From NCBI GenBank assembly GCA_016748015.1, contig JAAOMT010000597.1, positions 496,001 through 560,000 of the forward strand: DNA of 64,000 nucleotides, in the 5' to 3' direction. The notes below the pieces were generated by a model. That model made no database searches. It was not told the origin of the DNA and saw nothing but the letters and a program-made list of their open reading frames with translations. This stretch comes from Geosiphon pyriformis uo1 (taxonomy: Eukaryota > Fungi > Glomeromycota). Below are positions 6,450-51,836 of this stretch, one piece after another. The number at the start of each line of letters is the position of its first letter. The first letter of the stretch is position 1. A program made the translations under genes and the position numbers.

Positions 6450-6488
<39 letters not shown>

Positions 6489-19296: not shown

Positions 19297-19327
<31 letters not shown>

Positions 19328-19443: not shown

Positions 19444-19487
<44 letters not shown>

Positions 19488-19990
19488 TATTATTATTATT
19501 ATTTACAAAAATTATAGTTTACAGTTTAATAATAATTGAATTATTAATTCAGAAACAATTAAATAAAAATATTATATAATATATTAACATTAAATATTAA
19601 AAACTTAAAGTTTTTTAGTTTATAATTACAAAATAAACAATATTTAATTTTATTGTTTTATTTTTATTATAAATAATAAATTTAACAGTTTTAATATATA
19701 AATTATTATACTTAAAACTTTTTTAAAATATTTGGTTGCTTAATGTTTAAATTATAATTACAATAATTATAGAATTTTTGTTTAAATATTTTATTATTTA
19801 AATATTTATTTAATTTTTATATATTGATTATTTTTAAATTATTAAATTAGATTTTTAACATTTAAAAATATTTTTTAAGTTTTATTGTTAATTTATTTAC
19901 TGTATTTTTTTTGTAAGATTTAAATAAAATTATATATAATTAATTGTAAATTTATTATTAATATATAATAATTTTTAATATATTTTGGTT
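16180..19990. repeat. Extremely AT-rich degenerate block (probable decayed repeat/TE)
   Basis: About 3.8 kb with very few CG, CC or GG dinucleotides, non-periodic, no ORF in the track. Confidence 0.55.
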
Positions 19991-28600: not shown

Positions 28601-30281
28601 TCGAATAAAGAGTCCTCTGTTCAGGATACATCAGCATACGAGTTTTTCGTCGTACCACTTCCAAACATTATCGTCCGCCAGGAATCTTCGAGCTTTTTTT
28701 TAAAATATTTTTTCAAAATCTTCAGGATCAAAGAAATACATCCACGGAAGCATAGCCCATTCTATGAAATAGTCGACAATGATCGTAAAGGTGAAATCTT
28801 TGAGAACCCAGCAATGGAAGCAATTATTGAGTATGAATGGCGTGCACAAAAAACAGGACTCTTTCATATCAAAGCAATATTTTATTGGATTTATCTTCTT
28901 TTTTTTTTGGTTTGGTCAAAACTATATTTGGATGTACGAGTTTATGGTGAAGACAATGAAGATTTTATACGCAAAGCTTCATATGTTATTTTGTGGGTTG
29001 CTTGTTTATTGCTTTTCTTTGAAAGCCTCCGAATTTCTCGACGCAAACTAGCATATTTCAGAAACATATATGGTTGGCTCGATTTGGGAGCTTGTGTTTT
29101 ACCTATTTCAGTGGTGATATATGTTATTAGAGGGAATAGCTCTGCTTGCTATCAAAGTAAAATTAAGTGTCAAAATACTATCATATTTATTGCCTTTACA
29201 TCTTTAGTCCTATCAATTCAAATGGTAAGAATGAAAAGATATATTGAGTTGTGCTGATTTAAAGGGTTTCTCTTTGGCTAATCTTTCTTTTTAAATTTTA
29301 GTTTTTGAGGCTAAGATTTATTCCAAGTAAGTCCTTAGAGATTTTAATATAATATTTTACCTAAAATAAAATCTCCTTCATTGATAAATCTCTCTATAAT
29401 CTATTTAAAGAAATTGGAGGTTACATTTACGCTCTCATTTACATAATTCGGAAGACTTTTTGGTTCTTAGTTTCTGTTGTTTTTATCGCAGGATGTTTTG
29501 CCTATACAATGTAAGAGGGGTTTTTATTTAAATTTAAAATATCATTATTCTTAATAGTAAATTTTCTTTGGTATTTCTCTTAGGTATTTACTGCTTCATT
29601 ACGCGCCAAAACTTGGGGTAAATCCCGGCTCGCCTACATATACCAATATCCAAAATGGAAACAATACCAATTCAACGATTGATTTGACTCAAATTATTAA
29701 TCCCTACGATTATACCGATAACTATTATAGCGAGTTTTGGAAGTCTCTTGAAGCTGTTTATTTTTGGGTGAATGGACGATGGGATCAAATCGATCAATGG
29801 AATTTCTGGCCAATTGACATCATTTCCTTAATGGCATCAATTATACTAGTTACTATTATGCAAAATATGTTGATTGCCTTGATGTCGTAAGTATATTTTC
29901 AAAGTAAGGAAGGAAAGAAAAAATGATTATGTCCTAATATAATTTTTCATTTTAAGTAACGCCTACGACTCAGCGAGGGAACGTAGTAGACGTGGGCTAT
30001 TACAAACGCGTACTCGTATGATTCTTGAAGCCGACGAAATAAAAACGGCTTTGGTTTTTATCATTCATGTCATCCCCGGTCTCTCGTACTTGCCAAAGTT
30101 TATTCCTAGGCTTAAACCTTTTTTGAAACAGGCACATTATTATCCGTCATTTATATATTATGCAACCGATAGAATAGAGGTTGTCACCCTTGATACTCAG
30201 GTCGCCGAAATGAAGGATCAGCTGGATAAAATCTTAAATGCGATAGCAAAAGGCAATCCAAAAAATAGTATTGAGTTTTGA
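25633..30281 (+). CDS. TRP-like cation channel (ion-transport domain with a long N-terminal region); exons 25633-25810, 25887-28373, 28455-29224, 29302-29326, 29411-29510, 29584-29886, 29957-30281
   Basis: All junctions keep the frame. Pre-TM motif IFENPAMEAIIEYEW, six hydrophobic segments, YFRNIYGWLDL, FLRLRFIP, pore region FWKSLEAVYFWVNGRWD and S6 motif VTIMQNMLIALMSNAY, typical of TRP-like channels. Confidence 0.88.
27208..27470 (+). repeat. Intragenic tandem repeat in the TRP-like gene (four copies of a 15-aa core; last period 75 bp)
   Basis: DIKMSNDQSAHTMPT / DIKMPCGQRAHTMPT / HIEMSNDQRAHTLPI / DIKRSDDQRAHTLPI; gagcccacactctgccgatagataatgatccaaaaca occurs at 27351 and 27426. Confidence 0.9.
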
Positions 30282-31345: not shown

Positions 31346-33221
31346 TTACAAACGAGCCCTAATCACTTGATTATCAGATCGGCGACCATATCGACTTCGG
31401 TTTCTGCCATCACGACGACCTTCTCGATCCCAATCATCACGACGACCACTTCGGTCTCTGCCATCACGACGACCTTCTCGATCCCAGTCATCACGACGAC
31501 CACTTCGGTCTCTGCCATCACGACGACCTTCTCGGTCCCAGTCATCACGACGACCACTTCGGTCTCTGCCATCACGACGACCTTCTCGGTCCCAGTCATC
31601 ACGACGACCGCTTCGGCCTCTGTTATCACGACCACCATCACGATCACCTCGGCGACCATCACGACGACTATCACGACCACCTCGGCGACCATCTCCCTCA
31701 AGTTCTTCAATGTTTTCCTATGATTTTTGAAGGAGTAAATATAAAGTATTCATGCAGAAAGTATTAAAAATGGAAATAAAACAATTGTTGTTCTCTTTAC
31801 CCTGAAGAATTCTTCGAGCGACTCGGGTTCACGACCATTAATTCTGCGGATGTCATCGGTTGGAGATACCTTATTTTCACGCGCGTATTCAATCAAGTCG
31901 AGGCTAATAAAAAAATTTAAAGTTGATATTTAAATTTAAAAATATAAAAGCATTTAAAGGAAAATCAAGTCACTTACATTTTTTCAATTTCAAATTCTTT
32001 AATGGGAAGGAAATCCAATGGGTCATTTTCCTCGTTAAATCGGCCACGGTAACCATCACCTCTTCGGCCACGTTGATAATGACCACCATCACGACGATTA
32101 TCACGATCACGAGGGCCCTCATGACCTTCATTAAGGGATCTAAGGTAGTCTTGTAATTCACGAGGATTCACTTCCTCATATTCAACTTGTTCGCGACCGA
32201 GGGTATCGTTGAGAATATCAACAATATCACCAGGAGATAGAGATTCAGGGCCAGTTAATTCGTAGACTTGATGTTTTCTTCCAGAATCTTTTCTGAATCT
32301 ATTATTTTCTGTGATAATATTCGCAATGGCACCAGTAACGTCACATAAGTTGACAGGTGCAAATTCATCACGGTCTTCATCCAAGGGCAAGCTGAAATAT
32401 CCGTCTTGAATTTGTTCACTCCAAAGGAGGAATACTTGTTGAAGAATTGTTGATCTATTTAAATGTGGAAAGATTGAAGAGAAATTTGGAATGATTAAGA
32501 TTGAGTCAAATAATTGAAAATTTGTAAAAAGTAAAAAAGAAAACTGATGGACTGAATACCTAAGTATCACAACATTTCGACCTTCCTCGCGCCATATTCT
32601 CTCAATTTCCTCAAATTCACGATGAGTTGCTGTTCGGCCTTCGTTAGCACCAATGACTGACAAAACAACAACATTACGGACGTCGTTTCTCCTGGCAGCC
32701 TACAAGAATCTAATTGTTCAGTGAAAGAAAATTTTTTGTAATTAATTATAAGATTTATTTACCCTGGCTAATTTTTCAGCTTTGTTCACTCGATCTCTGT
32801 TTGATTCGGCTACCCAGACCAACCAATCAACATTTCGAAGAGCATGATCAAGGGATCTATCGTTATCAAAATCAGTTTCTCGGACTTCAGCTCCTTCATA
32901 TTCCAAACGCTGGACGTTTTTATCATTTAGATTTTGAGTCAAAGCTCGGACTTCAAAATCTTCATTGCCTCCACGGTGTTCTCGCCTTTCTGAAACTTCA
33001 GAGCGAGCGCGATTTTCGTTTCTACGACCACTTTGACCTCTTCTGCGTCTATAATCGTCCTCATCACCATCACGACGACCACGTCGGCTTCCACACAAGA
33101 GACCTCGAGCAATTGTGTTTCCAATGTAGCGATCCGTAGATGTGACAGCGATGTTCCAGTTTTTGTTGTGGCGACGACCAGAAACTGAACGATTTTGATC
33201 AGAAATTTCGGCTGAAGACAT
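31346..33221 (-). CDS. NmrA-like (atypical SDR/Rossmann-fold) protein with Arg/Asp/Gly-rich insertions and tail and C-terminal PTS1 (-ARL), paralog 1; exons 33221-32763, 32699-32560, 32454-31978, 31903-31801, 31717-31346 (about 516 aa)
   Basis: Frame-preserving GT-AG junctions. NmrA-like segments EVRALTQN, GAEVRETDFDNDRSLDHALRNVDWLVWV, AARRNDVRNVVVLSVIGA, FAPVNLCDV, VYELTGPESLS, INGREPESLEEFF. Last exon ends RSDNQVIRARL* (this frame is missing from the ORF track). Confidence 0.88.
31394..31609 (-). repeat. Four copies of a 54-bp coding tandem repeat (GRRDDWDREGRRDGRDRS)
   Basis: Unit acttcggtctctgccatcacgacgaccttctcggtcccagtcatcacgacgacc repeated nearly perfectly. Confidence 0.95.
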
Positions 33222-33301
33222 TTCTCTTATGCTGAATGTGGTTTGGTAAAAATAAGTGGTGTTTTTGAGACAATTACTTTTTCACGAGAGAAAGGAAGGA
33301 A

Positions 33302-33349
33302 GCAATTGGTGAGGAATCTGGGAAGACGCTGAAGCTCTGTATATTTATA
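33302..33349 (-). promoter_or_regulatory. Core promoter of paralog 1: TATAAATA...CAGATTCCTCACCAATTGC
   Basis: Motif shared with paralogs 2 and 3 at similar spacing from the TATA box. Confidence 0.65.
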
Positions 33350-35253
33350 TTCGTTTGGAGCTGCTAAATTCTTTAGGAAGTACTGAAAAACTTTGATGAA
33401 AGAAAATAGCATGCTTTCTAACTCAAATTTTTTCTGATTAAAGATTGGAATAATTAAAATTTTAATTATCATTGATAAAGAAAATTTTCATTGTTATCAG
33501 AAAAAGATTGCGCCATTTTCTAACATCATCGTCGATGTTGCAGTAACGGGAATTCCAACAACTTGAATTATTTTTCGTTACCCTCTATTGAAATGTTTTG
33601 TCAATTATTAAGACTTTAGCTATGTTTTTACGTTTTATTTTTTGTGCGTGAGAAAGGTTGGAGACATAATAATTTTGGGAATTCAATGAAATTTTACATC
33701 TTTGGTTGATAATTCATAAATTGAATACGCCAACTGCATGCATTAATATTGATCTAGTTTTCAATACAAAAACACCACTTTTAATTCATCAAAGATCCTT
33801 TTTTCCATTGTTTCCTTGACTTCTTATAGCTTTGGGAATTTTATATCTTTTAGAACTGGATATTTATAGAATCTCTAAATTTTTATATTTCTTTCATGAT
33901 TTAAAATTACTATTATTTTCTTGGCTTTCGTATGATTTCAAAATTAATCAAAGGATATCTCTTTGAAATTTCAAACTAAAAATGTAATTAATATCCAATT
34001 TTGCTAAATAATGCTAAGTGCTAACCTCTTTTTAAAAAAATAGATCGATCGATCTGATATCAGGGATTAGATTTTTATCGAAAACGACATGTGTTAAAAA
34101 AGTACAAAAACACGAGGAACGGGAATTTTTTAAATCTTGTATCTTCCCATTTAAGCTATAAAAACATGCATTTTATAAATTATTTGTGAAACGAAACACG
34201 AAATTTATCTAATGATATATAATATTACAAACAAAAAATAAGCTCTATCAATGACTATTTTAAGCTATTTTGGGAAATAATTTTTTAAAAAAGGATATTT
34301 CAATTTATAAATATTTCGAGCTTTAATAGTTAAATTTTTATTTGTCGAGCATAAATAGCAATAGTTTCCAGTTTTCGTTAATCTATTAATGTGAGCCTAA
34401 AGAGAACAATGAAAATTTGCAGTTTTTTGATTCGCCCGATCATCTGGGCAAGATTATCCGAGACAATTTTTAATGGGATGTGTCGTTTGAAAAGTATGTA
34501 TAATTTTTCAAAATTATACATACAAGAATATATTTCAAGTCTTATGTTTTTTTTTCCCAGGCTGAAAATTAAAATTTTGTTTCATAAAGTTAATAAGTTA
34601 AAAGTTTTTTTGCTAATATCAGTTTGGACATGAAAAAGTCGTGGGTATTTGTTGTTATATTACATATTACAAAAATCATTACAGGCTAACAAATCGATGC
34701 CAAAATGTTTTATTCCTCTTTTAATTCAAGATTTCTTTGCAGTTAATCATGATAATCAATATATTTTCATAATTGAACCAATTTTATACACATAAAAAAT
34801 TTAATTTTTTTCTCAATTTAAAAAGCATGACTCGCAAAAAAAAAATTTGATAAATTATTTTTAAAGGTTAGTATTTAATTCAAGATCGGGTTTGATTATG
34901 AATGAAAATTTTGGTATGAATTCAAAATACTTCAGTACCCTGTAAAGTTCCCGTCTCAAAAAAAAATAATTTGTAATCGAAAGAATGGCGTACGAAAATA
35001 TTGAAAAAAACACGCCACATTATTATCAAGCAAGATAGAAATAGCTTGATTTGTGAAAAAATTGAATAACAAATAAGATGATAGAACAAAAATACTTGGA
35101 TTTATCGTTAAATTCAAAATAGGCTGAGATTTTTTAAATTTTTTTGTTTCAACGCTAAATGATAACAACTTCCTTTGATTTTGTAAGATGATTGGCTTCT
35201 GAGGTATCCCATTTAGAATTAATTTATTTTAAAAATCATCGTCATTTTAATTA

Positions 35254-35703
35254 CCGTAGAGCACTACTTATAGTACCAAGGGTATTATTCAAAACTTACT
35301 GGTCAGGAAATTGTATAGTACCCCTAAATATCATACATGGATGGAAGTATTAAATATAAAGGGAGGGGGTACTTTTAATACTATTAATACTATTGGAATT
35401 CATTTTCAACAAGAAAGTAAAATAGATTATTCATCTTCTAATAATTATGAAAATAATCATAATATAGAAGAAGATTGTAATATTGATGAAAGTGATAGTG
35501 AAAGTTATGAAAATGAAACAACATATAATAATAGTTTGGAAGATTAAATATGTAATAATAATCATTAAAATGTAATAAAATACCCGGGTCTTATTAAAAA
35601 TAATATGAGTTATAATTTAAAAAATGCCTCAGATACTTTACAATTTTTAAAAATTAATATCATATAATGTACCCGGTCTTAATTATGCGGTAGTGCTTTA
35701 CGA
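35254..35703. mobile_element. Non-autonomous Tc1/mariner-pogo-type element (MITE), TA-flanked
   Basis: Left end TA|CCGTAGAGCACTAC; right end reverse complement TA|TCGTAAAGCACTAC; subterminal repeat tacccg(g)gtctta near 35581 and 35670; acidic ORF remnant inside. Confidence 0.65.
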
Positions 35704-36214
35704 TAGTGGTTAGTTTCTTAAAATCAGTATGCCAAATAGTTAAAAATTAATTGATGATTGAAAATAAATAAATTGGCATTAAGCAAAACAAGTCAAAGCA
35801 GTAATAATAAATTTAGGAATTCATAGTGCTTAAATTCAAATCTTTTAAAATCATTTAGCTAATTAAACCAGCCTAATCTGAAAGTGAACAAAAAAAATGT
35901 TTCATGGTTCACATGTCCTTCCATAAAAAGATATCAAAGCTTTTCGATTTACCGTTTCATAAAATTTACCAACGAGGAATAATGCTATATCGCATATCAG
36001 GTTAAAATTTTAAAAAGCTCACATGTTTTGCCAAATTTGATCCATGATTATTTAAAAAAAAACTTTTAAAATAAAAAAGTGAGAAAAGGTGGGACACATG
36101 TCTTTCTTTTTTCGCCAAATTCTCGAATCTAAATCTGTCAAAAAATGCAACCCATTACGTTTTTCTAAATACCATTTTTCCTCAAAGTTTTTCGCAAAAA
36201 GATCAAAAATCTTG

Positions 36215-36256
36215 TATAAAATAGTGGGTTTCTCCCAACTCCTCTTCACAATTGCT
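36215..36256 (+). promoter_or_regulatory. Core promoter of paralog 2: TATAAAATAG...CTCCTCTTCACAATTGC
   Basis: TATA plus TCACAATTGC, shared with paralogs 1 and 3. Confidence 0.6.
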
Positions 36257-36303
36257 CATAATCAAGCGATTGAGAATTCCTGAAACAAATAAATTTTTTA
36301 ACA

Positions 36304-38003
36304 ATGGCCTTACAAATACAAGATAGTGTTAGTTACAGAAACCGTCGCCGTGGTGAACGTCGTTCTGATCAAGACAACAGACGAACCGGAAGAGTTGGCA
36401 ACAATAGAATCGGTTTCTCGGCATGTGAGCGGTGGGTTCCAAACTGCATTACCCGTGCCTTCGTTGGACTTTCTGGTGACACAAATATTGACCCAGAAGA
36501 ATGGGACGTTTATGCACTTACTCGTCAACCCGGATGGGAACAAATCGAAGAATTGAGAAGGGCGGGCGTATGTGTACAGTTCACTGATTATAGCGACATT
36601 GATTGCTTGATGGACTCGCTCAGGGATCTTGACTATCTTATTTGGTTCGCTGAAGGTGGTAATCGTCGAGTTGAAGAATCAAAAATGATGGCTGAGGTAA
36701 GAGTTTTTTTTGAAAAAATATACATTTTTGGAGCATTCTAGAATTCGTTTAATTATTTTCTTTAAAATAAAAGGCTTGCAGGAGGATGAATGTTTGCGTC
36801 ATCATGGTTTCAGTTCAAGGTGCTGATGATGGTGAAGGTAAAACTTTCGACGCTTATAGACAAATGGAACGAGCATTTGAAAACGAATTAGCTGAAGAAG
36901 ACCTCCAAATTCTTCGGTAAAATTTCTAATGTGATTAAATATGATTCAATTTTTAATATTTACAAATGCAATAATATTTGATTATTAGATGCGCATTCAT
37001 CCAACAAGCTTTCTGGTTGTTCAGCCATTATATTCGGGTAAATTGCAAGCTAAACATGATGATCGATGAATGTAATGACTTTTTCCCTCCAATAAATTTC
37101 AACGACATGGCTAATGCGATCGAAAGCTTGATGATGTGCCCTATTGATCAAAAGATCTTCACATTGACCGGCCCTGATGCTGAAAACGCTCGTGATTGCG
37201 TTGGACTGATCAACAATAGCATTACAGGTGAAATTGGGTATGCTAGGATGACCCGGGAAGAAATGGAGGAATATCTTAGTCATCTTCCACCATATGCTTA
37301 TAACCGAGAAGAAAATACATATCGTCGAGGAGGTGATAGAAGAGATCGCGATGGTTCTCAAATTCACAATTATGGTTATGACCAATGTGATTATCCACGC
37401 CCTTTCCTCCCATTGTATTGGGCAGAAGTTGAACTCTGGCAAGTATTGATCATTTTGTTCATTTTCAAAAATTCTGATTAATGCTAATGAGTGAATATCT
37501 TGTTGAATTAGGTGTGATTTTATGGAGTACATGAAGAGTGGTAAGGCTAATTCCCCAACCTTGCAAGTACATGATATTACTCAAACTCCCCCTCAAGATC
37601 TTTATCAATTTTTCATGGTAAATTATATTTTTGGCTTTATATTGAGAAATCTTTGAAACAAAATACTTACCTATCTTTAAAACAGAGGAGTTCGGATGAT
37701 TTTGAGCCATCGACACGAAGAAATGGCAAAGAGGGTCGTCGGCAAGATGATCGATTCAATCGTGGCCACCGTGGAGATTTAAGACGCCACCGTAATTGGG
37801 AAGATGATGAATATAATCGTGGTCGTCGTGGTAATTCAAGACGTCATCGTGATTGGGAAGATGATGAATATAATCGTGGTCGCCGTGGTGATTCGAGACG
37901 TCATCGTAATTGGGAAGATGATGAATATAATCGTGGCCATCGAGGTAATTATAACCGAGGCCGTCGATCTCGTGATGGTAACCGATTCATCGCCAAGCTA
38001 TAA
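36304..38003 (+). CDS. NmrA-like protein with Arg/Asp/Gly-rich tail and PTS1 (-AKL), Cys-rich paralog 2; exons 36304-36696, 36774-36916, 36989-37438, 37512-37617, 37686-38003 (about 469 aa)
   Basis: Colinear similarity to paralogs 1 and 3 (DVYALTR, SLRDLDYLIWFAE, FPPINFNDM, IFTLTGPD, MEEYLSHL, PFLPL); same four intron positions as paralog 1, the third being GC-AG; ends GNRFIAKL*. Confidence 0.87.
37758..37928 (+). repeat. Three copies of a 57-bp coding tandem repeat (NRGRRGDSRRHRNWEDDEY)
   Basis: gggaagatgatgaatataatcgtgg recurs at 57-bp spacing. Confidence 0.93.
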
Positions 38004-39925
38004 TATTTGACTTTAGAGATCTAATGCTATCTCGGAAGTTCAGATTTTAGAACAGAATTAGCTTTTGTACTTTTAGAGAAGATAAAGTTTTATGGATTAT
38101 TAAAATAAAACAATTCTGAAATTATTAAATTTAAGAGGTTCCCAAAAAAGCCAAGAATCTCAGTTAAAGTTCCTAATAAAAGTTGTGGCATTGATAAAAC
38201 CGTAATGTATTGATATTAACAGTGTAAAATTTCAAAGGTCACAAAAGATCTGGTTGCAATGTTGTAAAAGGCTTGGATGAAAAATTATGGGTAGTTTCGA
38301 CAGATTATTTTCTCGAAGAACAAGACAGGGGTAAATCTCTGCGATTGAATTATCAATTATTACAGCTAGTATTTATTTGGGCAGGTAGATGAGCAATTGC
38401 AATGATCTTTGAACATATCCCATGAGATTTGTTTTAGACAAATATCACGATATTCTATTTAAAAAAGAAGTTAGAACTTCAAAAAAAAAACCGATCAAAA
38501 AATCACATCATTCGAAACAAAATTGCTTTTAATGAAGTTATAATTTAAATATTTATGTAATTCATTGTGTATGATTCTTTTAACCATGTATCCAAATGGT
38601 CTCAACAAATACTTTGAATATTATCCCGGAATTAAAAAATTTTGGAAAGTTTACTCTTTTATCAATTGAAAAATCTTAAAAAACTAAAAATAAAAGTTTG
38701 TCCCGCAATTTAGAGACAGCAAAATCAATCAATCAATCAAATCACATAATTTTGTGTCTAAATGCTTTATGTATTTAAAATTTCAGGATTATGACTATAT
38801 TATACCATTTTGCAAGTTTTAAAGTCAAATTTTCTAAATTCATCTCATGCTTGAAATTTTTTTAATTTTTTAATTATATGTTATCAATATTCATACCTGA
38901 TTTTTTCTTTTAAAACTATACTAAAAATAAAATAAAAAACTAATCAACCTTAAGTTTTTGAAAAAAAAAGGTAAACTACTCAAAAAACTGATTTGAAACT
39001 TTTCTCAATAAAGCGACTTGTCTATTTCTAAAAATTTAAGTAAAAGTAAAAATCTTTTCTCATAAAATTTGTGAATTTAACCGAATAATCCAAATTCTCT
39101 AACAGCTTGATATTTGTAAAAAGGGATCTGGTTTTTTAACTGAAGAAATTGCTGACTAACAAAGTCCTAGATTTTATTGAAAATTATCTATTTCCTTTTA
39201 ATCAAAAATTAATTATTAATCCAAAAACACTTTGAATTATTTGAACGAAAATTGTGAGTTTGAAAGAGACTTTATATCTCTGTTAATTAACGTAAGAGAA
39301 CTTATCACTATCAAAGAAATTTGACAAATTCATAGCAAAAGCTGCCAAATTTATATTCAGAATAACTGAATTTTTCATTTACCCCAAATCTTTAAGTAAA
39401 GCATGTCATAAGGGAAATTTTTTTCGAATTAAAAATTATGAAGCCCAATGACAGAGCCTCGAGAACTTTTAGTAAAATCACAAAATATTTTCACTCTGTT
39501 CCTGTTAAGTATGCACAATTTTTAATTTTGAAAATTGTTAGCTCTGGGTGCCTTTGTGCAAAAACTTGGTGACATAATAGCTACATTAATACTTTTTTTT
39601 TCGAGACTTTGTAAAAATTTCCAATTTAGTTTTTTATTTCAAAAGATGAAGAATCATCAAAGTGCTCAATTATATTAAATTATCGAATTTATAATTAAAA
39701 GGGTTTTAAAATATTTTTGCTCTAGGTTCTCAAGTCAGAGTTTTTTAAATTGCGTATATATCAGAAAAAAATCTCCTTTTTTTGATTTTATTTTGTTAAA
39801 ATGAATTAATCAATCTTCAGCCCACCATTGTTGATTGATTTATTTGGCAAAACTCTCTTAAGATGCCCATTCCCAAATATCTTGGCCTATAGACACAAAA
39901 AGAATGTCGCCATAAATCAATGATA

Positions 39926-42110
39926 TCAAATTAGTCCTCGGCGTTTGGCTTGTATCATTCCTACTACACCGATAAAGATCATTAATCCTACGATCCAGAA
40001 AAACCAAACCAGATCGTCTTGATCGTCCCCAGGTACCTTCACATTCATCCCGAAAATGCCTTGAGAACGAGAATTGAGATAAATAAATTTTGATAATTAG
40101 TAGCAAAATTTGATAGATTCACTAAGTGAATTGCTAGATTCCATCTTATTTTGGACTCCCACCTGCTATCAAAGTAGAAGGAAGAAGAATTGTGGCAAAA
40201 ACTGAAAGCTTTCCAATTGCATCGTTTGTCTTATTGCTAAGTTGTGTGATTTCAATCGAGATTTGAGCCAAATAAGTGGAATGTGATCGACCAAGAATAT
40301 TTTCGCAGTGATTGATATTTTGAACCATGGTAATAATGTGGTCTGTGAAAAAGCATAAGTTTCTGAATAGATTTTTTCTAAAATTTGAAATATAGACAGC
40401 ACACAATCTAAAATAAATACCTTGAATGTCATGCAAGTAGAGCTTTACTTCACCACGATCACCACCAGTTGCAAGTACTTTTTCCTCGCATCTTTTAATT
40501 AATCCTTTAATAACATCGGCTTTACTTCCCAACAATCTCAATAAACTCATTACAACCTTTCGATTGTGCCCTATTCGCCGTAACATATCAGATTGTTCGG
40601 TTTGTCTTAAAATTAAAACGAGCTCATCCATTGTGTCTGTTTCAACTTCAACTTTGCGAACCAGCGGTGCAAATGAGTCTGTTATGTCATCGAGAATAGC
40701 GTAGTTTATCCAATCTTTTGAGACATATTTAAAGGGCGAGATGTTTAAAATTCTAAGTCGTATATTACGTTGAAAAAATAAAAATTTGTATTAGTATTTT
40801 TAGTATACCTGGAGTAACTTTTATGAAGTCCCTTAAATGCCTTATTCGCTCTCTGACGTTTGATGCGTGTGGTGCTTGCTTAAAATGAAACTTTTTAAAT
40901 GTACAAGGAGCATTGGATTAAAATTTCTAATATTGCGAAACTATTTAATATTTCCACAAGAATTGCAAAATATAACCTTACTGTTAAAATTCCTTCCTTC
41001 ATAACAACATTGTAAATATTGACTGGTTGCAAGAAGTTTGGACTATTCTGATCTTGAACAAAAGAACGGAAACAAATGAAGTAATATGTACGAAAAAGGT
41101 CACACTTTTCTCGTGATTCTTCCATTGCTATATCTTCCATTGTCAATGGATGAATATTAAATATCTTGATGCAAAAGCAGATATTTGATTAAAAAGTTAT
41201 CAAATGGAATTTGGATGTTTAAATTTAAGATTTGAAGCATATTTTACCTTGCTCAACATTTTCATTTCTGAATCACTTGGTGCCAATACATTAATCCAGA
41301 AAACTCCTTGCTTTAAGAGATTTTCAAAACTAGTTTCTTCAGGTGGCAATTCAAAAAAAGAATGTGCTTGGATTGCCCCTCTCTCTACTGAATAAAATGT
41401 AAATCGTAATTTATCCGATAAGTCCTCACCTGGTAGCTTATAAATTTAAAAATTTTTGAAATAAATAAATCTTCAAGATTTCAAAAAGAATACTGTCGAT
41501 ATTATATAAATACCCTCGCTCGATCTCCATATAAGCTCATTTTTCGTTTTTGAATTCTTTTTTTATATGAAGAATTTCTTGAAATTGTTGGACTTAATAA
41601 AATAGGAGGACTCAAAATTGTATTTCCGAAATTTATCTCATCTCTCAAAGTATCACTCTCCTGCCATTTTATATTTTCTTCATTTGCATATTTCTCCAAA
41701 GCTTCGAAATCAATACCAGATTTAGCTTCAGAAGGCGCTGAACTAGCTGGGAAACAAAAATCTTGGGTTATATCGATATTTTCCTCGTATATTGAGCCTG
41801 CCTCTTGTTTATTATGGTAATCGGCATAGAGATCTTCAGCTGGTTCGGAATTTTGGCTGAATAAAATGTTCGTGGGTGTCGTGGTGATGGCTAATTTTTT
41901 CGCAGGTAAAATATTGGCTGATAGTGGTGTTGGGGATTGAATTTTAAGAATTGGTAATGCTTGAAGCTTTTGTTTTAGGGTACTAGATTTTTTGAGGATG
42001 GATGAGGTTTTTGATGAGGATGATATTCGAGAGTCGATTGATAACCTTTGTCCTTTTTCTTCGTTGTTGAAATTTAATGGGATATTTGATGAATTATTTT
42101 CACTCGACAT
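39926..42110 (-). CDS. CorA-family Mg2+ transporter (fungal ALR1/MNR2-like); exons 42110-41514, 41436-41248, 41164-40982, 40890-40809, 40714-40421, 40342-40163, 40059-39926 (about 552 aa)
   Basis: Motifs IFNIHPLTMEDI..EESREKCDLF, DWINYAILDDITDSFAP, LYLHDIQDHIITM, RSHSTYLAQISIE and the CorA signature GIFGMNVKVPG between two TM helices; all junctions GT-AG and in frame. Confidence 0.95.
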
Positions 42111-43497
42111 TATTGATCTTGATCAATTGTATGATTTGAAGTTGGGGATTTTTCCAAAATTAATATATTTCGGATGGTAACGAATGTTTTTAAAATTTTA
42201 ATCGGAACAACGTTCAGGCTATTACGTTGTTTGTATATTTTGAAACTTTATCATTTTAAAATAAAGCAAAGATTTACACTAGATTTTAGTTTGGTAGCCC
42301 AAAAATTATGATATTTGCATAAGGTCTCACAACCCTAGAATTCGGGTGATACATTTACTCTGTATGCAAATAAATGGAATCAACTGATTAATATTATAAA
42401 TTGAATGATGTACCTAAACTTATGCATCGAAATATTACTACCAACTTTTATATGACCGAAATTTAATAATCAGGTAGTTTTTAAAAAATCTTGACTGGAG
42501 GATTTTTTTTAAAAAAAATCTCCATTCTGAATTTAAATAAAATCAAGAAATCGATCGTATTTGTCTTTTTCCGTTATCTAGCTACCAAATTTTATGAAAT
42601 TAATAAAATTATTATAATTCTGAAATTAAACTTGTGTTCAGACATAATTAATTTGAAAACTAAAACTAAAAAATTAACCATTATCCGTTAAATTAGACAA
42701 TAAAAATTTTTTTTGAAAATGAAATTGAAAAATTAAAATGTTTAGATAATCGAATCAAAAGAATTCACACATAGTAAAAAAAATTAAAACAGTTGCAATA
42801 TTAAATATTCTGAAAAGAACAAAAAATTTCTGATAATAAAATAGCTAACTTATCAAAATATTTTACCAGATTTTGAAAAAAATTGGTTTGAAATAAATCT
42901 CATATTGAAACAAATAGCATATATTTAATAAAAAAGACAAAAAACTTTTTAATCACAAATATACATTATAAAATTAATATGTTATTTTCTAGCAACTTTC
43001 GAATTTTTTGAACAATTTCAATTTAGATTCATTATTTAAGGTTAAATTAACAATTTGTTTGAATCTTTTATTAGATTTTGATTTGAAAACAATTAATTAA
43101 AGATAAAGAACCAGAAATCTTAATTTATAGTGTTTTAAAAAAACCAAAATTGTAAATTTTTTACTATGAGTCAATCACAATCTTAAATTTTAAATATTAA
43201 TAAATGATTTTATAATATATTTTAATAAGATATATGTTTGCTGTGTTTTTTTATAAAAAATTCACAATGACATTTCATCAATTAAACTAAATATTTGCAA
43301 TTTTCTTATAAATTGTGCATACACTTTTTAATCTTGTCTTTCATAATATTCCAAAGACTTTTAAGTTTAAACTTCAAACATATTCTTATTTTAACACTTA
43401 CTGTGGTTTTAAAAAATTGAAGTTTATTTTATTTAATGATTTTAATAGGTTACAACCAGTGTTATTTTAATTGTTACATGTTTGTAATTCTTAATTA

Positions 43498-43823
43498 CAG
43501 TAATACCTCTCTTTATAAGTACATACTCTTTCTATATGTAAACTATAGTCTCGTTTCAAGTTCGAAACTTAGAGCTAAGTGCATGCGCTTTATATTCTGC
43601 ATGTGCAAACGATTCAGAATTCCAAGTAAATTAGAATACTCTCTATAATACATATACATGATGATGACCAATCAGGTTGTTTGTTAGTAATAATAATATA
43701 GCATTAGATTTAATTTTGATTGGCTTGGTGGCTAGTCACGTGTAAAAAGTGCACGGTTTGCATTTACTGTAAAACAATATGTATTATTTAGTCCTAAGGT
43801 GTGCGCTTATAAAGATATTACTG
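43498..43823. mobile_element. MITE, pogo/Tigger/Fot1-like (CAGT termini, TA target duplication)
   Basis: Left end TA|CAGTAATACCTCTCTTTATAAGTACATAC; right end reverse complement TA|CAGTAATATCTTTATAAGCGCACAC. Confidence 0.7.
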
Positions 43824-45396
43824 TATATAAATGCAATTAAATAATGAATATTATTATTAAAAAAAATGGGATCTAATTATTAATGAAATACTTATAGATT
43901 TACCACACATAGTTTTTTATATTCTATTTTATTTAAATATTTTGCTTCAGCTTTTTAATAATTCCATAAGAAAAATATTTGTTTAATAATTTAGTTTGTT
44001 AACTTTATAAACAGTTTTTTTTTTTACAAATCAAGTTTAAGATTAATTTATTTAACAAAATTTTGAAAAAAATGAGTTTTTTCTTTAATTAAAATTGTGA
44101 AAAGTATTTTAATATAAAAGCAGCATAAGTTTTTTTTTTGTAACTCACAAAAAAAAAAATATATATATATATATATTTAAATTAAACCATTTTTTTGATT
44201 CTAAATTGTTTTAATAATAATGTACAAATAACTTTATAACATTGAGTAAATTAATTTTTAGAGCTTGAATCATTTGCCTTTTTTACAACTACTTAATTTC
44301 AGAAAAAAAATAGTTGACTAATATTGTATTAAAAGATAAATTTAATAAAAATTTATTTATACTTCCAAGTATTTTCCATTACTTTTTATAAAATAATTAA
44401 TAAAAATTAACTTAAAAATTTTCAAAATTTAAAACATGTTAATTATTATACTATATTATTCATATGTTTTTAGTATTATAGAAGAAATTATCACTTTCGA
44501 GAATTTGGAAATTAAATTAGTTGCTCGCCAAAATTCTTAAATTAAATATTATATTAAAACCAAATAAACTCTTTACTATTCAGTAACTTAAGATAATTTT
44601 CTTAAAATAACATTAAGAAATTTAGAAATCATTGTTTTTTGTTGTCTTTCTTATAAGCTCAGGTTGTTATGTACTGGCAGTACGATTAAGCTTTATAATG
44701 ACATTTTTTGGAATATTATTAATTTGTAAAATTGGAGAGATTTACGTTTAAAATGATTTATTAACAGTTTTAAAACTTTTTAATTGTGCAGTATAGTGTA
44801 TAAATGCTTTTTTCGAATATGAAATGCCAACCAATTTTAATTTTATGCCATTTCGAATTAAGTTTTAAATAAATAAATAAATAAATTTCAATTTGTCTAT
44901 TAATATGTGAGAATTGCTATGGTAGTATCCAAAAATTTTTTAATAAAATTTCTAACACCTAATTTATAAATATGAATAAATATTATTTAAATTTGTGATT
45001 AAAAAAGCAATGGTAGTTATTTTGTCATGTCAAGAGTTTTTAACGCTTCATATTTTGTTATAATTAATATTAATAAACTTAAAGATCTGAAAATAATTAA
45101 CCTATTTTCTTTTTTATTTATTTTATTTATTTTTTTAAAAAAACCAATATTTGCTCAGTTTTTTATAAAAAATATTTTTAGATGGACATTAAAGAAGGTG
45201 AATGACTTGGTTAGAAGGAAAACTGAAAATGCATCACAAAAAAAGAAACTGCTATCCAGAACGTAAATATAAAATAAAATCAAAATCGCATGTAAAAAAG
45301 GAAATATAAAATGTAATAATAATAAGGGTGGCTTGTCACTATAATTGCGTTGTGCGAAAATATTCAGTGGTTGGGCTACACCTTTGGAAGAACAAA

Positions 45397-45407
45397 TAAT
45401 AATAATG

Positions 45408-45454
<47 letters not shown>
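45397..45454. repeat. (AAT)n microsatellite
   Basis: Direct reading. Confidence 0.9.
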
Positions 45455-47731
45455 TTATTAGCATTTTATACTGCTAATATTTGTTTATGTTGTTTTGCTA
45501 CATTACTCATTTTAAATTGAAAATTGTAGTATTTTTAAGAGTTTTGTATAATTTATATAAGATAACAGTTAATATAATAAAGCGCTCTTGGAAGTTTTTA
45601 ACTAGACAATTAAAAAATCCAGAAAATCAAAATTTGCAGTGTTTACAACATTTTTCACTTTTTATGGATTGGTGAAAGAACTCGAAAGCTTGATGGAGTA
45701 TTTTTGTAGAATTCAAGATCTGATTGGAATTAAAATTGGCTCCTAGTATAGAATTTGATTTTTCGATATAGTGACCCCTCGAAATACGGGGCAACCAAGT
45801 TAAGTACCAATGAGGTACATATTTCGATATAAATATGTTTTTGCCAACCGGAATAATTTTCAATCCTTTGTATCATTGATTTCTGCCTCCGAAAAAGCGA
45901 CGTTATTGACGGAATAATTGAGGAACTAACCAGATTAATGGTGCCCCGTTTTTTGTTTTTAAGGTCTTGCCAAATGTGTTGATTCGAAAATCTGATTTGC
46001 CTTATGAAGAATGTATTGGAGGGCCGATGCAATTATCCCGACTCTGTCAATTATCTTGATGTTCACAGATGCGTGGGAGAAATTTATCCAAGTTAATTTA
46101 CGGCCATGGGAAAGAAATTGTAATTTATGAACAGTATTGGTGATCTAATAAAGTGTTAATTAAAATTTAAACAATAATGAAAGATTACTCCTATTACTAA
46201 GTTTCTATAAATAAAGATTATCATTATTATGTTCTATTTGAAATTCTATTAAAATCCAGATATATTTAAGGTGCCCAGGATTTAGGACGTTATTCAATCG
46301 ATGGGAAGGATGCAGGAATCCCAAATGTGTCATTCCGTCTAGTAGGAATAATCAAAAATCAAAAATTCAAGACAACCAAGAAAATGAAGCAGATCGTTGA
46401 TAGTGAAAAGCATGACGTAACCTCTTTTAAAGTCCAACTAATACCATAAAAATAGTCTATAGTGGTGAAAAAAAGTTAGCCCTTTGACCCTCTTGAATTA
46501 AAGAGAACTCAAATAAATTCCAATTATTATGCTTCCAGTCATGCATAAATAATATTAATCGTATTAGAGATATTCAAAGACACTGACTTTAATAAAAAAT
46601 AATAAAAAACGCCCGATACTCAAAAGATTATTGGGAAGGACTTACGCCGCATGCAAACTATCTGATGTCGTCGCAGGGAACTTTTATAATGGGAGGGCTG
46701 AAAAATAAATATGAGGAGAGTATGAATTAGATTACTCGTCATGTTCCCGGAGACATATGGGACATGGGTAAGTATTCAAAACCAATTCGGGTTTATTAAA
46801 GGGATTATCTATAGGGGCATGTCCTAATTTACCCTATGGAAAAAAAATGTAATTTGCTGTTTTCATCATTTGTGGAAGCGATTAATGGTGATTTGGGTAT
46901 CATTTGTCTGAGCTGGTTCCAAGGTAAAGGAAATAAAAACACATCTACAACCCAAATATCTAAGCTTTGCGATAGCTTGAGCTTTGAAATTAGGCCATTT
47001 TTACCGTGAACAATGGGCGGACCATTAATGTACCTTTTTCTACCCATTGACAGATTTCTACACGACCTTTCCAAGCTTTGATGCTAGAATATCACAGAGG
47101 CTAAGGGGCAAGATAAAACTGTCATCCAAATATTCTAAGTAGATGGTAAAAACTAAAAATTTGCAAAATTTAGGATTATTTTTCTTTATACAATTAATTT
47201 TATTTAATAGCTTGCTCAAAGGGTATTTTTTTGAAAAAGATCTTTTACCAGTATCAAAATAAGAGGGTTTTTTTTAAAATTTTCTTTGAGCAATGATATC
47301 AATACAATTTAGAGAAACATTTAATCTTGATAAAAAGAACAATCTCGAAACTTTCCCGAATATTCCTAATTAGAAAATATTCTTTTATAAAGATAATTTC
47401 AAAATTCTCATGATAATGATATATAACATTAGCTATTAATGGAAAAACAACTTCCGATTGAAAAAGGGAGGATAAAAAACCCAAGAGATGGCTAATAACA
47501 TTGCATATACTTATTGTAAATGAAAAATTGCAAAGTTACTTCCTTTTTAACAATTATTTTTTATCTTTTATTTTCTATTATTATTTATTTTAAAATTAAT
47601 GTTAATAAATTAATATTTTTATTTAATAAATAATGATTATTTATTACATAATCAGTTTATCCAATTTTTAATTATAATTAATGCAAAACCAAAATAATTT
47701 AACATATATTTTACTGAATTTTCTTGCCAGG

Positions 47732-47762
<31 letters not shown>

Positions 47763-50034
47763 AAAAAACTACATGCTATTTTTATTATGTTTCTAGATAT
47801 TATAAAAATGTTTAACCAATATTTATTACAATTCTTTATTTATGAAAACTCTTAAAACATTTAATAATCAAATTAAAACTCAATATTTTGAATATCTTTA
47901 CAAGTCTAACTTAAACAGCGTTTTTAAAACAAAGAAATATGAAGCAAAAATATAACAATAAATTGTTTGCTTAATTGAATAAATATTTTGTTCTTTATTA
48001 TCTAATAAAATTTTAATTTTAATGTATTTTATTTAAAAATTTATTACAGAATTTCTCAAGTTATATACTCTTCTATGCTAGTTATACATTAGCTGTTTAT
48101 CGATAGGGATAAATATTAATGTAACTATAATTGTGAATGTAATGACAACTCATCTCGAAGGATATTCGAAAATTTTAATTAGTTTTTTTTTTGAAAGTAA
48201 TATTAAAAATATTTTTCAAAAATATATTTTAACACATAATTTATTAGTCTTCTTTGAATCGTAGTTTTCAGGCTCATTCGACACGATTGTTAGCCAATCA
48301 CTTCTAAAGTTTTCAAATTATACAAGATTTTTGAATCATTTTAAACCATTCACCAGATGTTCCCCCAATATGTGGCTTAGATTACCAATAAATTCTTTAT
48401 TATATAGTCGATAATCTAAATTTAAAAATTTTCACGAATAATTCAAAACTAAATTAAAGGCTAAAAGTTTTGTTGAGCCTGGATCCTCTTTATCCCTTGA
48501 AGATACTAGGAAAAACGCAAATAATTCCCATGGAAAGTTTTTAAATTTAATCAAAAGTTTTTGTGATATGATGCAAAAAAAAAAAATTCTTTCGAAGCCA
48601 AGAATTGGAAAGAGGGATATTTCAATTGTTTTACTATTTTTGAATTTTAAAGACATGTTGATACTGAGTATCAAAATTTGATTAGTATTATTAAAAAACT
48701 ATTTCCCATTTGGAAATCACCATTGTCATAAATAATGATTTACTGTTAAATTGTATCTAATAATCAATCTATCAAGGAGACAATAAGATAACTTAAACTT
48801 AATCTCAAAACAAAGGAATATTTGATATAATTAAAATCTGATAAAACGTAAACTTATCTTTTTCCTATTGAAAAGTTTTATCTTTCTCACAATGCAGGAG
48901 ATATTTTTAATCGTATATTTGTGATGAGAAGCTTAAAGATGGACCCGGTATTCGTGAACTGGAACAATCTTTATTAATTTTAAATAACAATGTGAAGATT
49001 ATCTTTGATCATTTTTAAAATGGGTAAAAAAAGTTTATCCCACGCAGAAAACATTATTGTTTATTTAAAGAAATCATTTTTCGAAAAAACTTCACCATAA
49101 AAGGAAGCAAATGAGAGTAATCGATATAAAATTTATTTGAAATTTAAAATATTTGAAATAAATTGCGTAATTAAATGATCGAAAGGAAATCTAAAAGATA
49201 TTAATCCTTATCAATGTAGTAGTAGTAGTAGTAGTAGTAGTATTTTAATCAAGAATATGATAGAATTAAAGGTTCCAAAATGGTGAAATTAAAGGAAAAA
49301 TCTCGCAGCTGTCTAATAAATTCTCCAGTTTACTCACATTATTTGCCACTGAAAAAGTTTTACAATGATATTTTAAAACTATTATTTTTGTTAAAAATTT
49401 GCGAGGCTAAACTTTTAAACTTAAAATCAGAGATACTAATTAAGGAAAAGCCCTTCAGCACGTACGTTCTAAATAAAATTGTAAAAACTTTAAAGATATT
49501 CAAAAAGTCAACATCAAGCAGAAAAAAGTTATAGTAAAATTTTTTTTGGTAAAAGTTTCGCAATTAAAATTTTAAACCATCACATCAAGATTACCAAAGC
49601 AAGAACTAAATCGTTAATTTGAAAATAGAGCATGTGTCAAAGATGGTGTTGCATCAACACCAGATTACAACAAAATTTTCTTTTTAGCGGGAAAAACTTT
49701 CTATTTGTCTCCGATTAAAACATATTTTTTCTCCTTGTAAAGATTAATAATTATCTTTTCGTGAAAAAAAAGTTGTAGTAAAAAAAAACGACTTGACACA
49801 TGGCTTTCAGATGAAATGGAAGCAAAAATCATGCTTTGGTAAAAAAAAATCCTTTTTTTAGAAGAATATAGAATTGTAGCTTTGTTGCACAAACCATTGT
49901 CCGCCAAAGCCATAATCTCCTAATGAATCACCCGAGGCGGGGAAAAAATTCCACAAAAATCTAGAATTTTAAGCATAATCTTCTTAAGTAAATCAATTAA
50001 AAAATGTTTCATCTGACAAAATTTGGAATTTAAT

Positions 50035-50079
50035 TATAAATAGAGGTCTTCTCAGCTCACTCAGATTCCTCACAATTGC
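50035..50079 (+). promoter_or_regulatory. Core promoter of paralog 3: TATAAATAG...CAGATTCCTCACAATTGC
   Basis: Nearly identical to the motif upstream of paralog 1. Confidence 0.65.
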
Positions 50080-50180
50080 AAGCAACAAGCAATTGACTTT
50101 TATTAATAACACAAAATAACTCTCTGTTCCCTTCCTATTTCTCATTAATTTTTTCAAAACCTATCCAAAACTAATAAAAC

Positions 50181-51836
50181 ATGGCATCATCAGTTGAAGC
50201 TGGACGTAGTCGCCGTGAAAACCGTGGTCGTGAAAACCGTGGCCGTTTCGGAAACAACAACACTTTCGCTATTTCTGCGACTGACCGATGGATTTCTAAC
50301 AACATTACCCGTGCTCTACTCTCTACCTGGCGGGATCAATGGAATATCGTCGCACTTACTAATGATTGTGACGACAGGCACGTCAGACAATTGAAACAGC
50401 GAGGCGCTGATGTTCGAGAAATTAACTATGGGAATACTCGAGACATTGAGAGAGACTTGAGAGACGTTGATTGGCTGCTCTTCATAGCCGAAGCTAATCA
50501 TGATCGAGTTGAGCAAGCGCAAGAATTAGCTAGGGTGAGTAAAAAATGATTTGTGTTAATTTGAAATATTTGTAAATAATTTATTTTATCATTCATTGAT
50601 TAGGCCGCAAATAACGCGGGTGTCTCCGGAGTTATTGTTTTATCTCTTCAAGGTGCTGACCGTGCCAACACCAAAACTCATCGTGACTATCATGAAATTG
50701 AAAGAATTTGGAAAGATGAAATAGAAGGTGTCACCGTTGTCAGGTAGGTCGGCTATTTTGATAAACTTGCTTTTATATTATAAATTTTTCTAAGCTTAAT
50801 TTTCTATTTATCTCCTGGAATTTGTCAGAATTTCTTTACTTCATGAATCTGTCTGGTTATGGAGCCAAAATATCAAAGAAAACGGTGAATTGAACTGGAC
50901 TCTTGACCAGGAAGATGACGAATTTGCCCCAATAAGTCTCGACGATGTCGTTGATGTCATCGAGAATTTGGTAGCTCATAAAAACGGTAATTTACGGGAC
51001 GAGCCTGACCAAAGGGATGAAAGACAAACTTATACCTTGACCGGTCGTGACACTTTAAGGGGTGCTGATGTTGTCGATATTATCAACAGCGTGATCAGCG
51101 GTGAAGTTGAATATCGAGAAGTTAATCGTCAGCAGCTCGAAAATTACCTAGAAAGTCTCGAGAAATGGCATGACAGAGATGACCGAGAAGACAGAGATGA
51201 TGACAGAGAATCTCGTCGCCGATCTCGTCGTGATTCGGAGCGTCAAGATGGGCGGTTCGACAGGGATAATAATCGTCGTGGTAATCAGAGACGTGGAAGA
51301 TTCGATGATGAAGGCTACAATTATCAACGTCCCTATCTTCCTCTCCGTCGCACCGACGTTCAGTTGATTCTCGACACTTTTGATTTCATTCAAGAAGGCT
51401 ATGGCAGGAGTACCCGCGATGTTCGTGAGATCACAGGTCGTGACCCAGAGCCGCTCTACAACTTCTTTGAGGTAGCGAATTAATTCAATTTTATTGAATA
51501 ATTTGAATTATGATTACAATATTTAAATGTTTTTTCCCTTTTTTAAAGGAAAACAAAGAAGATTTTGAGACTGAGAGAGATGGAGGCCGATTCGGTCGTG
51601 GTCGCCGTGGTGATTATGGTCGGGGTCGTCGTGACTGGGATGATGAATATGGTCGTGGTCGTGGTCGCCGTGATCGAGATGATGGATATGGCCGTGGTCG
51701 CCGTGATCGAGATGATGGATATGGCCGTGGTCGCCGTGATCGAGATGATGGATATGGTCGTGGTCGTCGCAATCGTGGAGATTATGGCCGTGACGATAGA
51801 TACGGTCGATATGAACAAATTCTTGCCAAATTGTAA
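50181..51836 (+). CDS. NmrA-like protein with Arg/Asp/Gly-rich insertion and tail and PTS1 (-AKL), paralog 3; exons 50181-50534, 50604-50743, 50829-51471, 51549-51836 (about 474 aa)
   Basis: In-frame GT-AG junctions; GADVREINY, DLRDVDWLLFIAE, AANNAGVSGVIVLSLQGA, FAPISLDDV, TYTLTGRD, ITGRDPEPLYNFF; ends YEQILAKL*. Confidence 0.88.
51657..51755 (+). repeat. Three near-perfect copies of a 33-bp coding repeat (GRGRRDRDDGY) with degenerate flanking copies (about 51594-51810)
   Basis: Direct reading. Confidence 0.93.

Follow-up and report, generated by a model that had tools for sequence, protein, structure and literature searches.

Within a 64,000-nucleotide stretch of the Geosiphon pyriformis genome (contig JAAOMT010000597.1, positions 496,001 to 560,000 of the forward strand; hereafter the window) lie three paralogous genes, denoted A, B and C, whose products combine an NmrA-like core with Arg/Asp-rich tails and a C-terminal tripeptide resembling the peroxisomal targeting signal type 1 (PTS1). 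We consider it probable that these genes belong to a Glomeromycotina-specific, PTS1-bearing peroxisomal branch of a Mucoromycota-wide family of proteins resembling atypical short-chain dehydrogenases/reductases (SDRs) of the NmrA/QOR2/triphenylmethane reductase (TMR) type. No description of this family was found in literature searches covering NmrA with PTS1 or peroxisomes, arbuscular mycorrhizal (AM) fungi, and PTS1 in Glomeromycotina, and its proteins are deposited as hypothetical. Exon models were derived by hand, base by base, and the matching deposited proteins were used for all full-length analyses.

The C-terminal tripeptide and the clade that carries it

The endings that the original prediction had read for genes A, B and C, namely ARL, AKL and AKL ahead of the stop codon, are present as described. 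A genome search that took exons 3 and 1 as queries returned exactly five loci, A, B, C and two further paralogs, D and E, both of which end in SRL; the canonical PTS1-type pattern [SAC][KRH][LM] is found in 5/5 of the Geosiphon paralogs. A profile of the three exon-3 pieces, queried against 1.84 billion representative proteins, yielded 174 matches at E ≤ 1e-3, of which 38 were at ≤ 1e-10. All named close relatives belong to the Glomeromycotina (Ambispora leptoticha, A. gerdemannii, Diversispora eburnea, Racocetra persica, Gigaspora rosea and Paraglomus occultum), and the other close matches are JGI and Logan contigs of about 1–1.7 kb. Two Ambispora copies, P0004 and P0011, lie in tandem 2 kb apart. 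More distant members, 300–350 residues long, stop 3–7 residues past the family motif FFxxNxxxF(R/K)P with neither tail nor PTS1; two of them have a species name, Actinomortierella wolfii in the Mortierellomycotina and Dichotomocladium elegans in the Mucoromycotina. Two relatives, P0025 and P0031 (1311 and 1338 residues), contain up to four matched stretches each and appear to be multi- or tandem-domain proteins.

A maximum-likelihood tree of 84 full-length matches resolved a 22-row clade (Shimodaira–Hasegawa-like approximate likelihood ratio support 99) holding every named Glomeromycotina protein together with 14 of the 15 PTS1-type endings. Gene B forms the longest branch of the tree (end branch 1.37) and is nested inside the family clade. 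The eight clade rows in which the signal is missing all seem to be gene models that are truncated or read into an intron, since each stops at the EIExx boundary of exon 3, at ITG or in VNIFTF, or is marked partial. The single PTS1-type ending outside the clade belongs to P0056, a Logan contig from a Mortierella-like clade that terminates in AKL after a 12-residue extension; judged by this ending, it may represent an independent second gain of PTS1 in the family.

Right alignment of the 18 complete clade C-termini allowed an entropy to be computed for each position. The last residue is Leu in 13 sequences, Ile in three and Phe in two; the second to last is Arg in 14, Lys in three and His in one; the third to last is Ser in 12, Ala in five and Asn in one. 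The pattern [SAN][RKH][LIF] fits 18/18 of these C-termini, with entropies of 0.9–1.1 bits at positions −1 to −3 as compared to 2.2–3.5 bits at −4 to −14, which bears out the earlier claim that the tripeptide is kept while the tail upstream varies. Positions −4 to −8 are basic or hydrophobic, mostly Arg, Ile and Phe, with two Glu in 90 cells, and acidic residues are nearly absent over positions −1 to −8. Thirteen of the 18 endings match the strict PTS1 pattern and five are near-variants (SRI, SRF and NKL). Among the orthologs, the endings are AHL, SRL and ARL in Ambispora, SRL in Diversispora, NKL in Gigaspora and SRI in Paraglomus.

A low-entropy tripeptide preceded by a basic or hydrophobic accessory context is the known pattern of cargo recognition by PEX5, and strong conservation of the tripeptide and of an acid-free context, while the tail turns over, is hard to explain without PTS1 function. 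Judged on these sequence features, the proteins of the A/B/C family are likely to be imported into peroxisomes via PTS1. The context of the signal is flexible in an AlphaFold2 model of the gene C protein, in which the tail scores below 50 in the predicted local distance difference test (pLDDT). The genome encodes PEX14, with two loci above the Pfam cut-off; a genome search for the acyl-CoA oxidase family (ACOX, PF01756) returned one weak exon match.

Rossmann core and cofactor loop

The NmrA-like core inferred by the original prediction is recovered by Pfam NmrA (PF05368, cut-off 27 bits) at 47.1 bits for gene A and 32.9 bits for gene C. Gene B falls below the cut-off and matches only NAD_binding_10, at 18.9 bits, yet it is 33–35% identical to gene C. 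Queried against the PDB, the family profile matched Escherichia coli YtfG/QOR2 best (2zcu, E 2e-21), followed by TMR, the NmrA-family regulator 8r2j, SimC7 and NDUFA9, with HSCARG matched weakly (E about 2e-3). The AlphaFold2 model of the gene C protein, built with 24 family sequences, has a mean pLDDT of 77 and a predicted template modelling score of 0.72. Its core, at pLDDT >90, spans roughly residues 28–275 and 330–392; residues 1–23, the loop at 218–225, an insertion following the YLxxL motif (~280–330, a low-confidence helix and then coil) and the tail at 394–474 are disordered. A Foldseek search with this model retrieved QOR2 (2zcv, template modelling (TM) score 0.84 by target, E 3e-14) as well as SimC7, SwaQ2, TMR and HSCARG, and the short Ambispora member P0015 has the same fold in the ESM Atlas. 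As modelled, the core is a two-lobed NmrA-type Rossmann domain.

The cofactor loop of this domain is altered. In the hidden Markov model alignment, the QOR2 segment IAITGATGQLG stands opposite iavtaaDswig of the family. Throughout the family, including the Mucoromycota members, a loop of the form [A/S/T]-x-D/E-x-W/Y-x-G replaces GxxGxxG, the signature by which an NAD(P)-binding Rossmann protein is recognized; the first two glycines are lost and the acidic residue is invariant. In Geosiphon, the loops read TSTDRYIG (gene A), SATDRWIS (gene C) and SACERWVP (gene B), with the last glycine gone in B and C, gene B continuing as WVPN. It is plausible from this motif that dinucleotide binding has been lost or altered in the whole family and not just in A, B and C, and we lean slightly towards the view, already present in the original prediction, that these proteins are non-catalytic pseudo-enzymes.

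The loop also bears on a different possibility: that the family comprises active peroxisomal NAD(P)H-dependent quinone or carbonyl reductases, akin to QOR2, TMR and SimC7, on which the repeats are neutral, tolerated surface expansions. The closest solved relatives are active NADPH enzymes, and several members keep an LTRNP segment where QOR2 binds the 2'-phosphate. AM fungi, moreover, rely on peroxisomal lipid catabolism. The loss of the first two glycines and the invariant Asp/Glu in the loops of all members speak against catalysis, as does the absence of the TRNP arginine from Geosiphon A and C, which read LTQN and LTND. On balance, we regard active reductases as a rather unlikely alternative to a non-catalytic peroxisomal branch.

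Arg/Asp tandem-repeat tails

The tails rich in Arg, Gly, Asp and aromatic residues that had been described for all three genes are indeed tandem repeats. The gene A tail extends 117 residues past the family motif (R 38%, D 22%, G 19%) and holds 4.7 copies of an 18-residue (54-bp) unit, after which a non-repetitive, acid-poor spacer leads to the terminal NQVIRARL. In gene B, 3.6 copies of a 19-residue (57-bp) unit precede the ending NRFIAKL, and in gene C the unit GRGRRDRDDGY (33 bp) is repeated 4.5 times ahead of YEQILAKL. Since the periods differ, the arrays must have arisen independently, and they converge on R, D and G with one Trp or Tyr per unit. Units are 83–94% identical at the DNA level. 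The tails, 87–117 residues long, have a charged fraction of 0.47–0.64, a net charge per residue of +0.01 to +0.11 and Arg and Asp contents of 24–38% and 12–22%, the composition of an Arg-enriched mixed-charge domain; Arg makes up 14–20% of the whole protein in Archaeosporales members. Searching the genome with the gene C tail returned no other copy, a result to be read with the caveat that the HMMER bias filter could hide low-complexity kin; with no second copy, the tail is not a shared module.

Charge patterning is not shared among the tails. Relative to shuffled sequences, the tail of gene A is better mixed (kappa 0.06), that of gene C is the same (0.14), and those of gene B (0.26) and paralog E (0.36) are blockier; composition is conserved and the patterning grammar is not. 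The tail of paralog E consists of a Pro-rich, PDRP-type repeat followed by an RG/poly-Asp stretch, and the same protein carries an N-terminal (RD/HD)n run and, after YLxxL, an insertion of ~200 residues that is helical by sequence character. A similarly long insertion is found at the same site in Diversispora P0013.

The original prediction raised the co-occurrence of PTS1 with the Arg/Asp tail across homologs, and only one half of this holds. PTS1 occurs in all clade orders sampled, whereas long R/D tails are seen only in the Archaeosporales, in Geosiphon (A, B, C and E) and Ambispora (P0004 and P0151); Diversisporales and Paraglomus have basic tails of just 13–48 residues and retain PTS1. 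The conserved feature is therefore the signal and not the R/D array.

This distribution also bears on the functional proposal of the original prediction, that inside peroxisomes the Arg/Asp tails condense the proteins into a dense core, serving either as a HEX-1/Woronin-like plug in hyphae that are coenocytic or to store nitrogen in the form of Arg/Asp-rich protein. The conserved PTS1 is in keeping with such a role, as is the high Arg content of the whole proteins. The tails are strong polyampholytes of slightly positive net charge, each repeat in A, B and C bears a single aromatic residue, and three loci reached one composition starting from unlike repeat units. In other systems, condensation of R/D repeats is reported to depend on their length (bioRxiv 10.1101/771592; PMC9324279). 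Set against these observations are the inconsistent kappa values, the tendency of well-mixed strong polyampholytes towards expanded coils, and the restriction of long tails to the Archaeosporales within a clade that carries PTS1 throughout. The two variants meet further difficulties: the atypical SDR fold is unrelated to the eIF5A-like fold of HEX-1, and nitrogen storage requires high abundance, whereas the transcript contigs are of low depth and a ribosomally made protein with 14–20% Arg is a poor analogue of cyanophycin. We consider a dense core or store of this kind unlikely. Equally unlikely, in our estimate, is the broader proposition that a cofactor-blind Rossmann protein, directed to peroxisomes by a newly acquired PTS1, became a multivalent matrix protein through repeat expansion of Arg/Asp/Gly/aromatic units in Geosiphon and Ambispora, the oldest AM-fungal lineage, whether as a protein-only mixed-charge condensate or dense core or with an Arg/aromatic-rich tail that speeds partitioning through the YG-phase import pore of PEX13/PEX14.

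Arg-rich segments could also direct the proteins elsewhere, as nuclear or nucleolar NmrA-like regulators in which these segments act as speckle, nucleolar or nuclear localization signals and the tripeptide is non-functional or confers minor dual targeting. The Pfam family includes regulators without catalytic activity, NmrA and HSCARG, and the N-termini of the A/B/C proteins are Arg-rich as well; mixed-charge domains rich in Arg are reported to go to nuclear speckles and nucleoli (bioRxiv 10.1101/771592; PMC9324279). Such a role fits poorly with the strong purifying conservation of the last three residues and their acid-free context in a tail that turns over, with the members outside the Archaeosporales that carry the signal on only short tails, and with the nearest relatives by sequence and fold being QOR2 and TMR and not NmrA proper; we hold it to be quite improbable. 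As for the neutral expansions supposed under the reductase alternative, the 83–94% identity of the units fits recent slippage or unequal crossing-over, but three or four independent arrays have converged on R/D/G, as have three or four sites within each protein, which argues for some selection on composition.

Taken together, a model for a retargeted peroxisomal family can be proposed. The ancestral protein ended right after ITGxxxxxxxxFFxxNxxxFxP, and one well-supported Glomeromycotina clade gained a C-terminal extension ending in S/A-R/K/H-L (rarely I or F), with six to eight basic or hydrophobic, nearly acid-free residues ahead of the tripeptide. In Geosiphon and Ambispora (Archaeosporales), independent tandem-repeat expansions inflated the tail, the N-terminus and one or two loops on the surface into disordered, near-neutral, Arg-rich mixed-charge segments. 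We infer that the protein folds in the cytosol, that PEX5 binds the C-terminus exposed on the flexible tail, and that import into the peroxisome follows. The altered loop would make the core a non-catalytic or atypical ligand-binding domain, a sensor or a scaffold, as opposed to an NAD(P)H oxidoreductase of the standard kind. Constraint on the R/D arrays would be compositional and not on sequence, the arrays acting at the least as a charged, flexible spacer that presents PTS1.

Gene models, the window and known systems

The 128-Mb genome assembly (792 contigs) is AT-rich and intron-bearing. The start and stop coordinates first given for the three loci are exact, and the models correspond to three deposited Geosiphon hypothetical proteins. 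All introns of genes A, B and C are GT-AG and all frames are intact. The further claims that the genes are paralogous and share an R/D/G-rich insertion after YLxxL were upheld: exon-1 and exon-3 pieces are 33–43% identical, and the insertions of A, B and C fall at one common position of the alignment, which is a variable loop in the family as a whole. Gene A has an additional R/D-rich loop within the N-terminal Rossmann half.

Table 1. Coordinates and features of genes A, B and C in the window, and the two further Geosiphon paralogs. A slash in a motif marks the exon junction.
Feature	Position	Strand	Description
Gene A (P0002, 516 aa)	31346..33221	-	Five exons, each an exact substring of P0002, in order
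Gene A exons	33221-32763, 32699-32560, 32454-31978, 31903-31801, 31717-31346	-	GT-AG introns
Gene A last exon	31346..31717	-	Completes motif FFR/ENIEEL, then R/D/G/W tail
Gene A insertion after YLRSL	32001..32129	-	R/D/G-rich (about EGHEGPRDRDNRRDGGHYQRGRRGDGYRGRFNEEND), just ahead of conserved D/PxFLP motif
Gene B (P0001, 465 aa)	36304..38003	+	Five exons, each an exact substring of P0001, in order
Gene B exons	36304-36696, 36774-36916, 36989-37442, 37528-37617, 37686-38003	+	GT-AG introns
Gene C (P0003, 474 aa)	50181..51836	+	Four exons, exact substrings of P0003, 'hypothetical protein G9A89_007134 [Geosiphon pyriformis]'
Gene C exons	50181-50534, 50604-50743, 50829-51471, 51549-51836	+	GT-AG introns
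Gene C insertion after YLESL	51156..51335	+	~60 aa, R/D/E-rich, longest of A/B/C; low-confidence helix then disorder in AlphaFold2
Paralog D	contig C692 (locus L003)		G/D-rich insertion, short basic tail, ends HRSRL
Paralog E (P0010, 634 aa)	contig C474 (locus L004)		Ends ISRL

Two introns deserve comment. Intron 2 of gene A (32455-32559, minus strand) lies within an open reading frame (ORF) that continues through it (31974-32663); its length of 105 nt is divisible by three and no stop codon lies in frame, so that retention would add 35 residues without truncation. In intron 3 of gene B (37443-37527), splicing to the AG closest to the homologous position (37510-37511) would put the exon out of frame, and the deposited model uses the AG at 37526-37527, leaving out about five residues (CDFME) conserved among the paralogs. 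Alternative splicing, or its erosion in what is the most divergent paralog, may account for this shift.

Elsewhere in the window, ORFs between genes B and C (40146-42110, minus strand) match part of a CorA-like Mg2+ transporter (PF01544, E 5.6e-8). On the plus strand, the ORF at 55521-56894 encodes a protein kinase domain (PF07714, E 2e-38) and that at 60780-61901 seven Sel1 repeats (E 5e-80), both typical of AM-fungal gene-family expansions. At 25868-29257 (plus strand), an 853-residue ORF is followed by a 266-residue ORF, neither with a Pfam match; unusually long and uninterrupted for an intron-rich genome, they may belong to a mobile element or a novel gene. The regions 4001-8000 and 16001-20000 are extremely AT-rich (GC 9–18%), and long low-complexity ORFs occupy both strands at 3981-5183. 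A Pfam scan of the window ORFs revealed no functional link between these neighbors and the A/B/C family.

Transcript evidence was drawn from one public run (X1), represented as Logan contigs, over the gene C stretch. Four contigs fall on exons only (50072-50366, 50373-50535, 50854-51372 and 51695-51757) and none on introns. The second runs beyond 50535 with CCGCAAATAA, which is the start of exon 2 at 50604; this crossing of the predicted junction between exons 1 and 2, together with the exon-only placement of the contigs, indicates transcription and splicing of gene C. The 63-nt contig at 51695-51757 falls on the tail exon. A second line of evidence comes from P0012, a close homolog on a 1279-nt contig with an uninterrupted 392-residue ORF reading from Met through the tail to SRF and a stop; in a family with three to four introns per gene, an intronless contig implies a spliced mRNA that includes the tail. 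The last exon opens with the conserved C-terminal family motif (FFx/ENxxxFxP), and the reading frame of the tail is therefore fixed by homology.

These data address the concern that the tails are artefacts, arising either from wrong annotation of the last exon or from (CGT/GAT)n expansions of microsatellite type in pseudogenes undergoing decay. The concern draws on the repeat arrays being open in other frames and on the opposite strand too, and on the strong divergence of gene B, which lies below the Pfam cut-off. It is countered by i) the conserved motif that starts the last exon in the same frame as the tail, ii) the GT-AG introns and intact frames, iii) the contig from a transcript-holding run on the gene C tail exon, iv) homologous intronless transcript contigs that continue through the tail to the signal, and v) the tripeptide kept in every complete clade C-terminus. 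The artefact explanation is largely refuted, and we give it very little credence.

Several observations weigh against assignment of the family to a Glomeromycotina-specific peroxisomal branch. Named members span the Archaeosporales, Paraglomerales and Diversisporales, and none is named from the Glomerales. As PTS1s, the five non-canonical endings among the 18 (SRI, SRF and NKL) are weaker or of uncertain standing. The putative loss of NAD(P) binding is read from the loop motif only; some members retain the QOR2-like TRNP site, and NmrA itself binds NAD+ through a non-canonical loop. The transcript data span gene C only, with its junction between exons 3 and 4 not covered by contigs. Finally, Arg-rich mixed-charge domains drive nuclear-speckle or nucleolar localization and could compete with PTS1 (bioRxiv 10.1101/771592; PMC9324279).

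Were the peroxisomal assignment to hold, the family would exemplify organelle retargeting through a gained C-terminal extension and signal, dated to the Glomeromycotina stem and followed by R/D repeat growth in one order. It would also let one ask, in a naturally occurring case, if Arg-rich mixed-charge domains, known to date from nuclear bodies, can act in a membrane-bound organelle or affect import; a condensate or import-pore role, if true, would be the first use of such a domain in an organelle lumen. Host lipids sustain AM fungi, which depend on the metabolism of their peroxisomes. To our knowledge, their peroxisomal proteome is almost unstudied, and the family could serve as a lineage marker for AM-fungal peroxisome biology. 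The Mucoromycota-wide members define a Rossmann subfamily with an Asp-containing, Gly-poor loop. If the tails are neutral, what is left is simply an unannotated peroxisomal NmrA-like family.

Among known systems, QOR2/YtfG (2ZCU/2ZCV) and the Citrobacter TMR (2JL1/2VRB) are the best profile and fold matches. They share with the family the two-lobed architecture, an E-x-x-x-E/K motif replacing the SDR YxxxK, and C-terminal helices including the ITG segment. They are bacterial NADPH-binding enzymes of ~285 residues with an intact GATGQLG loop and without disordered insertions, tail or PTS1, whereas the family has the [AST]-x-D-x-W-x-G loop, eukaryotic introns, R/D loops and tails, and PTS1. Aspergillus nidulans NmrA and HSCARG/NMRAL1, of the same Pfam family and fold (HSCARG TM score 0.74–0.80 by target), show that a Rossmann protein can work by binding ligands or partners instead of by catalysis; more distant than QOR2 and TMR, they keep the dinucleotide loop, bind NAD(P), are cytosolic or nuclear, and have neither PTS1 nor R/D tails. 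A non-catalytic, NADPH-holding structural subunit within an organelle is known in NDUFA9 (39-kDa, NUEM) of complex I, a related atypical SDR (TM score 0.52–0.62 by target) that differs in being mitochondrial, in keeping NADPH binding and in lacking PTS1 and R/D tails.

HEX-1, the Woronin-body core protein of the Pezizomycotina, is likewise a lineage-specific PTS1 protein recruited from an unrelated cytosolic fold. Its eIF5A-like domain self-assembles by crystal-lattice contacts of the folded domain; with an atypical SDR fold in its place, any assembly in the present family would have to come from the disordered tails. Those tails resemble R-mixed-charge domains in pairing R with D/E, in their high charged fraction and slight net positive charge, and in their repeat-like character. 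Known domains of this type act in the nucleus with RNA, whereas the family tails are fused to a Rossmann core, vary in patterning between paralogs and end in a conserved PTS1.

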